Shown here: in pieces, positions 1,578 through 27,504 of the stretch
How the letters are laid out: each line of letters starts with the position of its first letter
Position numbering within the stretch: the stretch's first letter is position 1
Source: Haliotis cracherodii
Taxonomy: Eukaryota
Direction: 5' to 3'
DNA length: 64,000 nucleotides
Assembly: GCF_022045235.1 (NCBI RefSeq)
Contig: NW_027266270.1
Span: 17,112,001 to 17,176,000 of the forward strand
Position numbers and translations under genes: made by a program
The notes under the pieces: generated by a model
Told to the model about the DNA's origin: nothing
The model's input: the letters and a program-made list of their open reading frames with translations, nothing else
Databases searched by the model: none

Positions 1578-2527
1578 CTACTCAGCGCCTTCTGCCTGTT
1601 TCTTTGCCTCTTTCGCGGCCAACTTCTGGTTAATATCGTCCAGGGATACGTCATAGTAATACAACCCGGTTGAAGAATAATCTACCTGAAAAACAAAATA
1701 GTAAAATCAAAAACTTTTGTCACCTATTCAGCGTCACCAAACTAGCTGTATAATTACACACCAAAGTACTTTCTTGTCAATGTTTAGATGACTGTAAGGC
1801 ACTAACATAAAACTGAAATAGACATGGAGGCTTATTGTGCTGCAGTCACATCTAGGCACCGTAATATGTAATACTCCAATCCTGTTCCATATATTTGTCA
1901 GCCATTTAGGTTAAATAATAAGTCACTCACTCTCTGAAGACTCGTTTGCGCCTGTGTTCTTGTGGCAGGAGAACTGCTTAGTGGTGTCAGGCAACAGACA
2001 TTTACTTTTTTATGCACATTGTGTGAGTGGCGGGTGGTACCGGTCGGGCAGGACATGCTTACCCTTTCCGCGAACGCCTGGTGTCATCACTTATTTTCAG
2101 TGATGCATTTATACGGTTTTCTCCGCTATTTTCCCCTTTACACCAGCCCGCCGGAGTCTATCGTGTTGGCTTAACGAGACTGATTACTACTCATGTTCAC
2201 GATCGACAATGTCTTCATACAACATGTGAAACTATAGTTTATAACTGTACACATTAAGTGCAGAAATAAGTTACTCACGTATCCATAGTCCACCACAGCA
2301 CCAACTGCGTACAAGCCGTAGTCATCATAGTTGTATCTGGCGTAGTAATATTCATAATCTCTCTTGTCCTTGTTGTTCTGCTTATCCACGTCGTTTGCAG
2401 AGGCGATGATTGATTTAGCGGCGTTCATGACGTTGTCGCCATTATTCTTGTTTGACCTCTTGGCCCTGGTTAGGGTTCTGGCGGAAGCAACGACAACAAC
2501 GACTGCAAGGATGACGAGGACCTTCAT
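1578..2527 (-). CDS. Gene A copy 1: secreted Tyr/Asp-rich prepropeptide, 118 aa; join(complement 2279..2527, 1578..1685); non-coding exon 1 about 2932..2960
   Basis: Signal peptide MKVLVILAVVVVVASA; RAKR and DKR sites; core DYEYYYARYNYDDYGLYAVGAVVDYGY; donor GTGAGT in phase 0; acceptor TTTTCAG; last exon VDYSSTGLYYYDVSLDDINQKLAAKEAKKQAEGAE then stop; AATAAA on - strand at 1532-1537; exons conserved in three copies. Confidence 0.88.
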
Positions 2528-2931
2528 TCTTGGATCTGTGAATATACATGTTGTAGTCAAAGGTATGGAGGCATGCCAAATAATTTAAATTGGATTCTCA
2601 ATTCTCACAATATCATAAACAATATCACAGTATTATTAACATTTACTGTATATATGTTCAGAAGTTACAAAATCGTCCGGTGCATCAAAACAATGAAAAT
2701 ACATACACAGTGTGGTCAAACAGGTAATGGCAAACTGACCTTTAGGAGTCGTATTGCAAACCTTCTCACCACAATTATTATTCTGACAATCAACGAAAAA
2801 TCATCACAATAGAATTTAAATATTTTTGTTTTCGTCAGAGACAATTATTTCGGGTTTGCTTCAAACTTTACTAAGGCCTTGAATGTAACCCTGAAAAGAA
2901 CTTTTGAGCAAGAGTCGTATAGCATACTTAC

Positions 2932-3235
2932 TTGCAGAGAGCACACGTTGATTTTCCGGTAATTGTACCAAAGTATGGCACCGTTTATATACACTGTGTA
3001 TACCATGTGCCTTCACATATCAGACTTCTGTGTTCACCAAAGATCGGGATAGATAGACACCTCCATCAGTGGGGGGTATCAGTGTCTCGTCTTCTCGGGT
3101 TTCTTCGGTTTCATCAACTACTGTATGGAACGTGGAAGTATTGCAGGATTAAATATCACGGCGCCAAATATAAGCCCTGGCTGAATTGTGATTGTCACTC
3201 ATTCACTGTAGAGGATCGCAAGCAGCTCATATCAG
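2932..3235. promoter_or_regulatory. Bidirectional promoter plus the two non-coding first exons, cassette 1
   Basis: Minus-strand TATATAAA at 2984-2991 with donor GTAAGT at 2926-2931; plus-strand TATAAG at 3169-3174, Inr-like TCATTC at 3199-3204, donor GTATGT at 3236; block conserved in all three cassettes. Confidence 0.72.
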
Positions 3236-3991
3236 GTATGTTCAGTGTACATAGGTTATGAATACCTTTTCTTATTACTTTACACTGATTAATCTAGAAT
3301 CAGTTCTCATATTGATTTTTAGCGTATTTCCAGTACCAATATTTTCGTTTTGAAAAATAACTTGAGAGTGTAACACTCGTGTTGATTATAGCCACAACCT
3401 GCGAATATCCCTGTTCTATATATCCCGGCCTGTAGACAAGAAACACAATCCAGTGATTGATATTTTGAGCAACGATCCACACTATCAACCAAGTCCCCGA
3501 CTCTGACTACCCGGTCCACCAAGTCGCCCCTAACGAGCAGCACGGGTTGATGGAGACCTGGTCTAACCCGGACCAACTCCTGTACTCCCTGGTTATATTC
3601 CCCACGAATACCATCCCTTGTCTCAATCATATTAAGTACCTACTGAAACAGGCAGAAGGAGGAAAATACCATTTAATTACTAAAATAAAATGCACACTCT
3701 GCCAATGGGGTGAGAAAGGATTTGAACTAAACCTAACATGTTTAAATTGAATTTGCTTTTCAATAGGCCAAGCTTGGGAACAAAAACAACATTATCTCGG
3801 TTGTGTACAATACATGTGATAATGTTAAAACCTGGAAAGAATATTTCATAAATTTTTGTACAAATCTCCAGATTTTGTGTTTTTACCTCACCATACTGCT
3901 CTGTAAAGGTGTTTATGAGATTGTAATAATGTTTCCACATCCATACAGTTTTGTATGATCAATACTTGACTTGTATCTCTAAGTGTAAATA

Positions 3992-24450: not shown

Positions 24451-24845
24451 GGGGCGGTCGGGAGGCCTAGTGGTTAAAATGTTCGCTCGTCACGCTGAAT
24501 ACTCGGGTTCGATTCCTGACATGGGTACAATGTGTAAAGCCCATTTCTGGTGTTCCCCGACGTGATATTGCTGGAATATTGCTAAAAGCGGCGTAAAACC
24601 ATACTCACTCACTCCGTTGTCATGATATTAATCGCCGGTTTCACAGGTCATGACTCGATTGGTTACAGGCCGCGGTCATATAGCTGGAGTGAGAGTATGG
24701 TTTTACGTCGCTTTTAGCAATATTCCAGCAATATCACTGCGGGGGACACACATGGGTTTCACACACTGTACACATGTGGGGATTCGAACCCGGGTCTTCT
24801 GCCTGACGAGCGAACGCTTTTACCACTAGGCTACCCCACCGCCCC
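24451..24845. mobile_element. Two SINE family 1 copies in inverted, tail-to-tail orientation (24451-24614 +, 24688-24845 -)
   Basis: Both match the family consensus. Confidence 0.8.
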
Positions 24846-25567
24846 TCATATAGCTGGAGTATTGCCGAGTGCATTTTAAAGTACATTAAAGACTTCTGAT
24901 GCGTTACGTATTTATCAACTTAATTCAATCGTGTGTTATTAAAACTTCAACTTTCTTCACAGCATTGTCACTATCAGAGGCGTAAAACACTACTCACTCA
25001 CTGAAAGATTTGTCTACATTTTGAAACGTAGCATCCTAGTGGGAATTACCACACCAACCCAACCCGGAAAATAAGTGTTGTCAGGCTCGGTGAGTGTGAG
25101 TGAGTTGGGTTTAACGCCGCTTTTAACAGTATTACAGTTATATCAAGGTGTGTCAGCTTAATGTGGGAGGAAAGCCCGAAGTGATGCAGGTCTCAGACGT
25201 TTACCATTTCGGTAAAACCCACGAGCACGGGTATGGTGCTGACAAACCTAGAAACATAATTGGAGAGAACCGGGATTCGAACGCCCAATCATAGGTTTCT
25301 GGCGTGCCCAAGGGACGCAACTCTGCTCAGCGAATCGCGGCGCCTTAGACGACTGGGCCATCCGTGCCCCCAGTCAGGCTCGGTGACTTGGTAGATACTG
25401 ACATCATGGCTGGGAGTGTCCTTCGTAGTGTTACTCTCTGATGTGCCTTGCCCAGACTTGATTATGTACAGAAAATGGCTTTCAATATATAAGAATTATT
25501 ATCACGAAAGTCGCCAGATGTCAGATGGTTCGATGGTGGATGACATTGTTAGATATTTCTCCACAGA

Positions 25568-27504
25568 ATGAACGTTACCTTTGTCTTCGTGGTGGCTTGC
25601 CTCGTGGCCTTGACCTTGGCTACACCTCGTGACGCGAGGAAGAACGCCAGGAAACAGGACCGACAGTCACAGGAGTCCGAGGGAGGGCAACAGAAGAGGG
25701 ATACTTTAACCCTCCTCGATACGGACACGACTTACGGTTCTTCTTCCGTTACTGGTTACGAAGATCATGGTTATGTGAGTATTTGAGGTGAACGATTCCA
25801 GAGTCTTTTGCAGTGCAGGATTCTTGCACCATTATAATGACGTCACGCTCTTGCGCAATTATAATGACGTCACGCGTCCTTGTAGGAGATTCAGAACCAG
25901 GAATTCACCGGCCATTCTGAACGTGCATTTTAAACACGTGAAGCTGCCTCAACTACAGGTCATTGATAATAGATAAATTATGTTTTAATCATATCATGGT
26001 TTAAGTCAGAAATCACTCGAATGTGTTGATTCCGAAAGTCGATTACAGACTCACCTTTTCAAGCTCATTTGTGTGCATATACTACACAATAAATTAAAGT
26101 AATTATCCTAAAGTCCCATCATGACCATAAATAGCCCGCAAGGTGGCGGTGTTTCAGTTTCGAACAATAACTGGCAACGTCAACACAAACCGAGTGTCGA
26201 GAGAAGCTTTTTTGAAAATCGTACGTAAGCAGGATCACCAAAGACCTCGAACTTCGTATCAACTTGAATGAAAACCTTGGATACCACAAATGGCTCCATA
26301 TCTGCATATAAGTCAATACATTTTCTGTAGTTTTATCATAAAAAATCGAATCGGTCGTGTTTGAGACTCTGCCTCAATTACAGTGGGCGGAGCTTATTTA
26401 GTGTTGCGCTATTAATAGCAAAGCACATGGTCATGTGACACATTCGATGCATATACGAAATGTACGTTAGTTATACAAGTATTAGCGACAAGATTCTTTC
26501 AGTTCAATCCGAAAATGACATATATATTTGTGTAGCTTATACAATAATCACATTGCATTTTAATTATTTCATAGCTTGACAGCCGTATGTCAATTTAGGC
26601 AACATAACAAACTGATAAACAAATAACGAAATAAAACTAGATGTTGTTGCCCTGTATTAGGCGTAGCTAGATAAAATATTGTACTTACGATAAACGAAAA
26701 TTAATTAATATGAATTTCTCTTTCTTTCACATAATTTTCACCCACAAAACTGAGCTTGATCAGTAGATACACATGTGTCCTGTGTATTTTGTGTGCGGTA
26801 GATTTGGATACACTTAGCGCACAGGTTTTAAAACATAATCCGGCACTGACATTTTTATTGTTATCAATGTCGGATTCTGATTGACTGAGACCCATTCTAT
26901 TATTTTCTATTCATATAACATGTCAGGTACATTTCTTATGTCCCCTGCCGAATTGCCGAACTGTTGGTATTATATTTGCAACATACCAACCGTAATTTTG
27001 TATCTCGAATTCATTATGTAAGACGCCATTCTCCGGTTATTTTCGATATTTTCCGAATGAAATAGATCCATGGGATTAACTCTAGTATTGTTTTCTGTCA
27101 TCTGCTATTTTTCGACGAACGTGAAAAAGGAACGAATTGGATAGATTCCTAACAGTGGTATTCTTACCGCTTCGGACCAAAGCATGCGTACATGTATGTA
27201 AGATAAATTCGTTGTCGATTGGTCGCCCTCGAGACCAGCGGATAACTTATATTATTAACTTCCAGGTATCACAAATAGTTCCTTGTCATAACACCTCCCT
27301 GCCTTCACACCATACAACATGTGTACAATGACCAGTGACATCAGACACCCACCATTTGTTCCACAGTATAACCAGTATGACTACGGGTATGGATGGCTCG
27401 AGTACTACAACAAAGACGAGGAGCAGCAGGAAGCCAGTCAGGAGACGCAGCAGAGACGCCGTCGTCGTAGAAGGGCAGTCCCCGTTGTCAGACGAGTACA
27501 GTAG
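25568..27504 (+). CDS. Gene B copy 3, 114 aa; join(25568..25774, 27367..27504)
   Basis: Signal peptide, KR-DTLTLLDTDTTYGSSSVTGYEDHGY, conserved splice sites and last exon. Confidence 0.88.

Follow-up and report, generated by a model that had tools for sequence, protein, structure and literature searches.

A four-unit array of divergently paired genes encoding secreted, tyrosine-rich proteins in the abalone Haliotis cracherodii

The region described here is a stretch of 64,000 nucleotides from the black abalone, Haliotis cracherodii (NCBI RefSeq assembly GCF_022045235.1, contig NW_027266270.1, positions 17,112,001 to 17,176,000 of the forward strand), called the window throughout and numbered from its first letter. 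It holds three units of a four-unit array in which each unit consists of two genes, A and B, divergently transcribed in a head-to-head arrangement. Both genes encode small secreted precursors with a tyrosine-rich core, both are transcribed and spliced as modelled, and together they form an uncharacterised family restricted to the genus, distinguished by its paired architecture and by a concerted evolution confined to the exons. We propose, with a probability of about 0.45, that A and B are disordered proteins of a matrix or material, processed by convertases and regulated together as a pair.

Gene models, transcripts and probable promoter of the array

The original prediction, made from the letters of the window, described a triplicated cassette of two unrecognised genes. 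The three intact units are found where it had placed them, and the count must be raised to four, since a further unit (unit 0) lies intact and inverted at 17,103,969-17,109,969 of the same contig, 2-8 kb upstream of the window; because of this inversion A0 and A1 converge, tail to tail. A search of the whole H. cracherodii genome yielded four copies each of A and B and no further ones, and all eight genes are intact with open frames. 'Unrecognised' is correct for the function and the family, for which Pfam, PDB and the ESM Atlas offer no match and the only relatives belong to Haliotis, and incorrect for the gene models: RefSeq already carries A and B in H. cracherodii and H. rufescens, named 'uncharacterized protein', with sequences equal to the spliced models. 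In H. rufescens these records comprise at least two A genes (LOC124111266 and LOC124111267) and at least four B genes (LOC124111268, LOC124111286, LOC124111289 and LOC124111290).

Within the window, the predicted exon coordinates of all A and B copies proved accurate, with open frames and GT-AG phase-0 introns. The coding intron of every copy of the array is in phase 0, opens with the donor GTGAGT and closes with a pyrimidine-rich acceptor ending in CAG. As anticipated, intron length varies while the exons and the A-B geometry are kept: the coding introns of units 1, 2 and 3 measure 593, 562 and 1499 nt in A and 779, 1227 and 1592 nt in B. An AATAAA hexamer occurs 34-61 nt past every A and B stop codon. 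The features of the three units are the following, a slash marking exon-intron borders and depths referring to the public runs X1 and X3 treated below.

1578-1685, minus strand: A1 last exon, coding part and stop; AATAAA at 1537-1532; depth 1605 in X1 and 5040 in X3
2279-2535, minus strand: A1 ATG exon, ATG at 2527; acceptor cacag/ATCCAAGA at 2536/2535; donor GTGAGT at 2278
2932-2960, minus strand: putative non-coding 5' exon of A1, from conservation only; the donor GCAA/GTAAGT ends the exon at 2932
2960-3240, both strands: candidate bidirectional promoter core of unit 1, with two TATA boxes ~180 bp apart
3200-3235, plus strand: putative non-coding 5' exon of B1, start approximate; the donor ATCAG/GTATGT ends the exon at 3235
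4936-5173, plus strand: B1 ATG exon, ATG at 4937; acceptor ctccacag/AATG; donor GTGAGT at 5174; equals RefSeq model P0003
5473-5514, plus strand: relic copy of part of the B ATG exon (its 3' end), within the B1 coding intron
5953-6090, plus strand: B1 last exon, coding part and stop; AATAAA at 6124-6129; joint into 5953 at depth 3472 in X1 and 2103 in X3
11126-11233, minus strand: A2 last exon, coding part, open frame
11796-12052, minus strand: A2 ATG exon, ATG at 12044; RefSeq model P0007
12940-13178, both strands: candidate promoter core of unit 2; B TATA box at 13104-13113; B 5' exon end at 13172
14788-14995, plus strand: B2 ATG exon, ATG at 14789
16223-16360, plus strand: B2 last exon, coding part, open frame
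20705-20812, minus strand: A3 last exon, coding part, open frame
22312-22568, minus strand: A3 ATG exon, ATG at 22560; RefSeq model P0001
23229-23564, both strands: candidate promoter core of unit 3; A 5' exon end at 23235; B TATA box at 23490-23499; B 5' exon end at 23558
25567-25774, plus strand: B3 ATG exon, ATG at 25568; RefSeq model P0004
27367-27504, plus strand: B3 last exon, coding part, open frame

Contigs of four public runs (X1, X3, X6 and X9, whose tissue metadata are coded) were placed on positions 1500-6200. In X1 and X3, k-mer depth reaches ~600-10,000 over the exons and 0-9 over unique intron bins. The two coding junctions singled out for checking, 2279/1685 in A and 5173/5953 in B, are both found spliced in these contigs. 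For A, loose contig ends at 1682 and 2276 read the end of the ATG exon joined directly to the start of the last exon, and the junction contigs bear a GTG valine codon and a DYSAT variant, as does H. rufescens A (P0006). For B, the joint into 5953 is preceded by nine letters that equal the end of the B ATG exon, and the junction reads DHGY in X3 and DQGY in X1, the latter as in H. rufescens B. At least two closely related species thus make use of both proposed coding junctions. Run X9 contains neither A nor B and X6 only traces of them; the expression of the two genes is thus conditional and, over these four runs, joint, which agrees with co-regulation. The original prediction supposed matched amounts of A and B; the depth of A is ~3-6 times that of B, k-mer depth being unsuited to ranking genes.

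The relic inside the B1 coding intron (5473-5514) is a degenerate version of the 14 codons with which the B ATG exon ends; GTAAGA comes next, and an in-frame acceptor is absent. The upstream part of the B contig was placed on this relic because it reads GGTTAC where B1 has GGTTAT. The stretch around it (5374-5609) is also conserved in unit 0.

Upstream of the coding exons, similarity from unit to unit ends 14-34 nt 5' of each ATG, where a well-formed splice acceptor is located, 8 nt before the ATG in A (cacag/ATCCAA..ATG) and 1 nt before it in B (ctccacag/AATG). Beyond this limit, the sole non-coding block alignable across all four units is a core of ~250 nt, found at 2960-3240 in unit 1, which is 78-84% identical between unit pairs whose remaining non-coding DNA fails to align. 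Its plus strand in unit 1 carries the TATA box AATATAAGCC at 3167-3176, with the donor ATCAG/GTATGT ~60 nt downstream; its minus strand carries ATATAAA at 2990-2984, with the donor GCAA/GTAAGT ~50 nt downstream, both invariant in the four units. A and B are probably three-exon genes, each with a short, non-coding first exon. We infer such an exon in B because the N-terminal extension of the RefSeq B3 model (P0004), which starts with 15 residues, is encoded in the homologous exon of B3: the first 14 residues and part of the 15th lie at 23515-23558, within the core. In A, conservation is what points to a putative 5' exon. With short 5' exons inside the core, the two promoters would stand ~0.2 kb apart instead of 2.4 kb, and TATA boxes ~180 bp apart suggest a compact bidirectional promoter. 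The pair would then be co-regulated through a core with two TATA boxes and start sites separated by ~0.2 kb. The 2.4-3.0 kb between the A and B ATGs would consist mostly of the repeat-bearing first introns of both genes.

Two further details of this core may be recorded. An invariant stretch, TGCAGGATTAAATATCA, is present in all four units ~10 nt 5' of the B TATA box (3144-3160 in unit 1) and contains a GGATTA motif of the K50 homeodomain type. In units 2 and 3, the B 5' exon region includes an in-frame ATG (GAATGTCAT) at 13125-13135 and 23511-23520, with which RefSeq extends B3 by 15 residues; at the homologous place units 0 and 1 have GATTGTCAC instead (3188-3197 in unit 1). This ATG lies near the expected start site and hence may perhaps fall outside the mRNA.

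Concerted evolution and properties of the two proteins

The units differ in their relationships according to the part of the sequence that is compared. Non-coding DNA groups unit 0 with unit 1 (79-94% identity) and unit 2 with unit 3 (77-85%). Between these two pairs the alignable parts are reduced to the exons and the promoter core, and alignment of the A introns of units 0 and 1 with those of units 2 and 3 scores at the level of shuffled sequence. The A exons are 95-97% identical among units, with a synonymous divergence (dS) of 0.04-0.20, and the exon tree places A0 nearest A3 and B0 nearest B2, which contradicts the non-coding grouping. Exons that are nearly identical and whose tree conflicts with that of the non-coding DNA indicate that they are kept alike by exon-confined gene conversion, acting on top of purifying selection.

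The contribution of selection can be appreciated in the B1 ATG exon, which escaped conversion. Its mature-coding part displays a non-synonymous divergence (dN) of 0.07 for a dS of 0.49-0.67, a ratio (omega) of ~0.13; omega is ~0.4 in the part encoding the signal peptide and pro-piece. Purifying selection thus acts on the tyrosine-rich core itself. The corresponding core of A is invariant across the four H. cracherodii copies. The B1-type variant of the signal and pro-piece is present in H. rufescens too (P0009), and the two B subtypes are thus older than the split from that species.

The A and B precursors count 114-129 amino acids (~13 kDa) and are organized in four parts: a hydrophobic signal peptide, a basic pro-piece ending in KR, an acidic core that starts with Asp, and a charged tail. 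Positions -3 and -1 of the signal peptide are occupied by small residues (A has ASA, B has TLA), and the net charge of the pro-piece is +5 in A and +7 in B. Mature A has 62 residues, of which 14 are Tyr (23%) and none Cys, with a net charge of -7 and an isoelectric point (pI) of 4.15; its core carries a net charge of -6 over 42 residues, without Cys or Pro, and its tail is made of Lys, Glu and Ala. Mature B1 has 70 residues, with nine Tyr, one Trp, no Cys and a run of seven arginines (R7). The B core, again devoid of Cys and Pro, has a net charge of -11 over 54 residues and a pI of 4.05, and the B tail, composed of the furin-type R7 run and nine more residues, a net charge of +9 over 16. KR precedes the core in all eight genes; the pro-piece of A has a second KR, and B possesses R7 and RR in addition. 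The signal peptide, the KR directly before Asp, the Cys-free mature part and the Tyr counts had all been predicted correctly. Between H. cracherodii and H. rufescens, four of the 62 residues of mature A differ.

From this sequence context, convertase cleavage, Tyr sulfation, formation of 3,4-dihydroxyphenylalanine (DOPA) and cross-linking are predicted for both proteins. The AlphaFold2 (AF2) model of A has a mean predicted local distance difference test score (pLDDT) of 41, its helices are confined to the pro-piece and the tail, and residues 82-94 form a single hairpin; the ESM Atlas model of B has a pLDDT of 0.53. Prediction of a complex between mature A and mature B returned an interaction score (ipSAE) of 0.00, a value that gives no verdict and speaks neither for nor against binding.

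Homology searches were made exon by exon, and the full-length steps used the RefSeq records P0001 (A3) and P0003 (B1). No Pfam family reaches its cut-off with the ATG exons of all copies or with the last exons of A1 and B1. The only recurrent match, below threshold, is Conotoxin (PF02950), which extends over residues 1-49 of B, its signal and pro-region; B1 scores 22.6 bits, B2 16.3 and B3 14.7, against a gathering cut-off of 25.1. A conotoxin identity was rejected: the match is subthreshold, covers the signal and pro-region only, and neither mature protein contains the Cys on which a conotoxin framework depends. A phmmer search with A against 1.84 billion representatives retrieved only A itself and a 51-residue fragment of the last coding exon, encoded on a 910-nt NCBI contig that probably stems from another abalone; the profile search with B retrieved Haliotis proteins only. 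In the ESM Atlas the best score for A and B is at most 0.83, which is chance level, a PDB sequence search gave nothing below an E-value of 0.36, and six LOC/XP identifiers and five A/B motif strings went unmentioned in the literature searched. The absence of a match to any well-described protein family, on which the original prediction depended, thus holds for HMMER, Pfam, PDB and the Atlas. Matches limited to Haliotis, together with the low pLDDT values, define a largely disordered orphan family that, as far as the searches reach, is restricted to this genus.

Whether A and B are related to each other was considered as well. They align in BLASTP with an E-value of 0.002, and the observed score of their mature parts is reached in 2-12 of 2000 composition-preserving shuffles; an hhalign comparison of the two gave a probability of 1.7%, that is, no support. 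Common to both genes are the exon plan, a pro-piece whose KR is followed by Asp, and an intron placed immediately past D(Y/H)GY. Paralogy of A and B is plausible and somewhat favoured by these likenesses, but not proven.

Candidate functions and known systems

If A and B are matrix or material proteins, their maturation can be pictured as follows. Furin-type convertases of the secretory pathway would cut off the basic flanks at KR and R7 and release anionic, largely disordered, aromatic-rich peptides of 6-7 kDa, the basic pro-pieces having kept the cores neutral until export. Outside the cell, the two cores would then work jointly as the bulk constituents of a secreted matrix or material, where Tyr would serve for stacking and enzymatic cross-linking and Asp and Glu for the binding of cations or mineral. 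Shell or periostracum matrix would be the likeliest destination, the alternative being another tanned, adhesive or mineral-binding secretion.

Precedents for this picture exist among known proteins. In molluscs, genes of this sort most commonly end up serving the shell or periostracum matrix, and AP7 and prismalin-14 are Tyr-rich or acidic low-complexity proteins of the shell matrix. The mollusc shell-matrix proteins (prismalin-14, KRMPs, shematrins and the abalone AP7) resemble A and B in being small, secreted, lineage-restricted, disordered, and acidic and/or Tyr-rich; A and B indeed combine secretion, biased composition, predicted disorder and an acidic pI. There is no homology between the two groups, and A and B contain only ~8% Gly and lack repeat arrays and a Cys domain. 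The AP8 nacre proteins (~8 kDa, alpha and beta forms), reported to be Asx/Gly-rich, are unlike A and B in composition and were rejected as candidates. Shell-matrix low-complexity proteins are highly expressed and often occur as tandem families, and tyrosinase is believed to cross-link their Tyr (PMC6003135, PMC4498902). In the shell proteomes of abalones, acidic and disordered proteins of low complexity or biased composition predominate, and tyrosinase and peroxidase are present as well (PMC6003135). Trimming by furin and carboxypeptidase is documented for FITZAP, itself a small anionic abalone protein (PMC6952181).

A number of points weigh against a matrix role. Five A/B motif strings are absent from the shell proteome supplements of H. 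laevigata, a weak negative since it concerns another species and 28 files of which some are truncated, and since the cores yield almost no tryptic peptides. The low Gly content departs from that of classic Gly/Tyr-rich shell proteins, and no tyrosinase match was found on the contig of the array (C7). Multiple basic cleavage sites would also fit a bioactive-peptide precursor, and the cleavage and modification invoked are predictions from sequence, the A-B binding a supposition.

A more specific version, which we hold to be rather doubtful, would have the anionic Tyr-rich cores co-assemble and become Tyr-cross-linked into a two-component, abalone-specific, self-assembling extracellular material. 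The supply of both components would be coupled by the 0.2-kb bidirectional promoter, the array would be kept uniform by exon-confined conversion, and the whole would be an independent reinvention of the design of the silkmoth chorion A/B pairs. In organization, the chorion locus of Bombyx mori is the closest system known. There too the stretch between the TATA boxes is conserved, the pairs are arranged in tandem with some reversed, and gene conversion keeps the coding regions uniform as their flanks diverge (PMC4639761). Divergent A/B pairs, a short, putatively shared promoter, tandem repetition and gene conversion are all found in the abalone array. The resemblance would be convergent: even at E<=10 no chorion family appears among the Pfam matches, and HMMER finds Haliotis proteins only. 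The systems also differ in scale, with dozens of pairs in the silkmoth and four in the abalone, and in their products, chorion proteins having Gly/Tyr/Cys-rich arms plus a central domain and lacking a KR pro-piece, while the single intron of their genes falls within the signal peptide region. The comparison is further tempered by the weak support for A-B paralogy in abalone.

Among the rival explanations, the one that fares best, though we judge it improbable, takes A and B for precursors of bioactive peptides (a neuropeptide, a hormone or a water-borne pheromone) that would be cut at KR, RR and R7 and act on receptors. Small precursors with a signal peptide, a spacer and several dibasic or polybasic sites are what such an explanation expects, abalone-specific peptide genes do exist (e.g. 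HGAP; PMC11108583), and the signal peptide and pro-piece of B bear a subthreshold likeness to conotoxin prepro regions; in O-superfamily conotoxin precursors (PF02950) this gastropod signal and pro-region is followed by a Cys framework that mature A and B lack. HGAP itself is Cys-rich and was discarded as the identity of A and B. The pieces released from A and B would be low-complexity stretches of 54-62 residues and not short peptides, no Gly-basic amidation signal occurs in either protein, and four near-identical tandem copies with a k-mer depth of 10^3-10^4 suggest a bulk product. Relatives in Haliotis only, with no orthologues in other molluscs, also contrast with most neuropeptide families, which span the molluscs.

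Two explanations appear markedly less probable still, and about equally so. The first is host defence: the Arg-rich C-terminus of B would be a cationic peptide, antimicrobial or cell-penetrating, which the anionic Tyr-rich region of B would keep inactive, and A a related anionic partner. Neutralisation of a cationic peptide by an anionic pro-piece is an established design, as in the precursors of defensins and cathelicidins, and in B the R7 tail (+9 over 16 residues) does adjoin a -11 core. A possesses no cationic tail, though its Tyr-rich core is invariant in the four H. cracherodii copies, and the Tyr-rich part of B, preserved by purifying selection in the unconverted exon, behaves unlike a disposable pro-piece.

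The second would make A and B gamete-associated anionic partners comparable to FITZAP/sp6, packaging or chaperoning cationic proteins in sperm or egg. FITZAP, the acrosomal anionic partner of lysin, is, as A and B are, abalone-specific, small, anionic and intrinsically disordered, with two coding exons and furin-type sites, and it acts through charge plus hydrophobic contacts (PMC6952181). Its basic sites are trimmed by furin and carboxypeptidase; A and B have basic sites at which trimming is predicted. FITZAP differs from them by an N-terminal poly-Asp, an open reading frame (ORF) of ~6 kDa giving a mature form of 3-4 kDa, alternative first exons and rapid evolution (PMC6952181), none of which is found in A and B, with precursors of 114-129 residues (~13 kDa) and no poly-Asp. 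The 90% identity clusters that contain A and B are named 'uncharacterized protein' only, despite the existence of GenBank sp6 records (PMC6952181), and no source gives either protein the sp6 name. FITZAP/sp6 was therefore rejected as the identity of A and B on its defining features, and the four differences in 62 residues between the A cores of H. cracherodii and H. rufescens are unlike the pace of rapidly evolving acrosomal proteins.

That A and B could be non-functional or mis-annotated ORFs, alike only through recent duplication, may be dismissed as extremely improbable: low-complexity composition and the lack of homologues beyond the genus would allow it, while abundant spliced transcripts in at least two species and an omega of ~0.13 where conversion did not act contradict it, and eight intact genes out of eight, orthologues in H. 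rufescens and non-coding DNA diverged past alignment between unit pairs all speak against it. Part of the total probability is assigned to none of these readings.

Surrounding sequence and significance

The array is interspersed with repeats. A very high-copy short repeat, probably a tRNA-derived short interspersed nuclear element (SINE), occupies 5190-5365, 10832-10996, 13765-13929 and 24450-24846, with related sequence at 3990-4480, and copies of it lie in introns and spacers of every unit; positions 10837-10908 match an Rfam tRNA model at 30.1 bits, and the summed contig depth of the repeat attains 10^5 in all four runs. About 100-130 nt past the stop codons of A1, A2 and B1 (~1440-1470 on the minus strand, 10990-11020 on the minus strand and 6205-6270 on the plus strand) begins a (GAGT)n run followed by TTTAACGCCGCTTT; the 3' flank of B2 has a similar stretch, CCGCTTTTAGCAATATTCCAG, without the (GAGT)n run. 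Elements of one and the same family seem to have inserted a short way past several poly(A) sites. Tandem repeats comprise 6.7 copies of a 73-nt motif in the spacer past B2 (17005-17489) and 17.7 copies of a 17-nt motif within the A3 coding intron (21346-21646), which make up part of the extra length of that intron.

Farther along the window, the plus strand of 33396-36780 encodes retrotransposon ORFs of 539, 319 and 130 amino acids, resembling, by eye, an endonuclease of the long interspersed nuclear element (LINE) type and a reverse transcriptase. A 5-kb CCA/CCACC-rich minisatellite follows at 37535-42648, with periods of 12-66, a GC content of 0.60 and a GC skew of about -0.9, and yields long spurious ORFs rich in Thr/Pro/His and in Gly/Val/Trp. 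Two near-identical ORFs of 136 amino acids, ~4 kb apart, are located on the minus strand at 43077-43487 and 47131-47541. Exons similar to those of an opsin or G-protein-coupled receptor (GPCR) are seen at 50814-51176 and 53254-53700, and a run of N at 53895-54098. The neighbouring opsin gene had suggested that A and B might be secreted lens proteins of high refractive index, an idea that found no support. On another contig (C78), ~20 tandem tyrosinase-domain matches occur on one strand at 7.54-7.63 Mb; these are most likely functional units of hemocyanin genes.

As of now, A and B add one more lineage-restricted family of secreted proteins without assigned function to the many present in mollusc genomes, and clusters of lineage-specific, secreted, low-complexity proteins are a kind already known. 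If the two proteins were a co-assembling matrix pair, they would provide abalone biomineral and biomaterial research with a compact system made of two 6-7 kDa, Cys-free, Tyr-rich partners that can be expressed and studied. The locus itself is a clear case of genome architecture convergent with the insect chorion locus, with divergent pairs, a probable shared promoter and concerted evolution, and it illustrates how gene conversion can be confined to exons while the intervening introns have lost all similarity.

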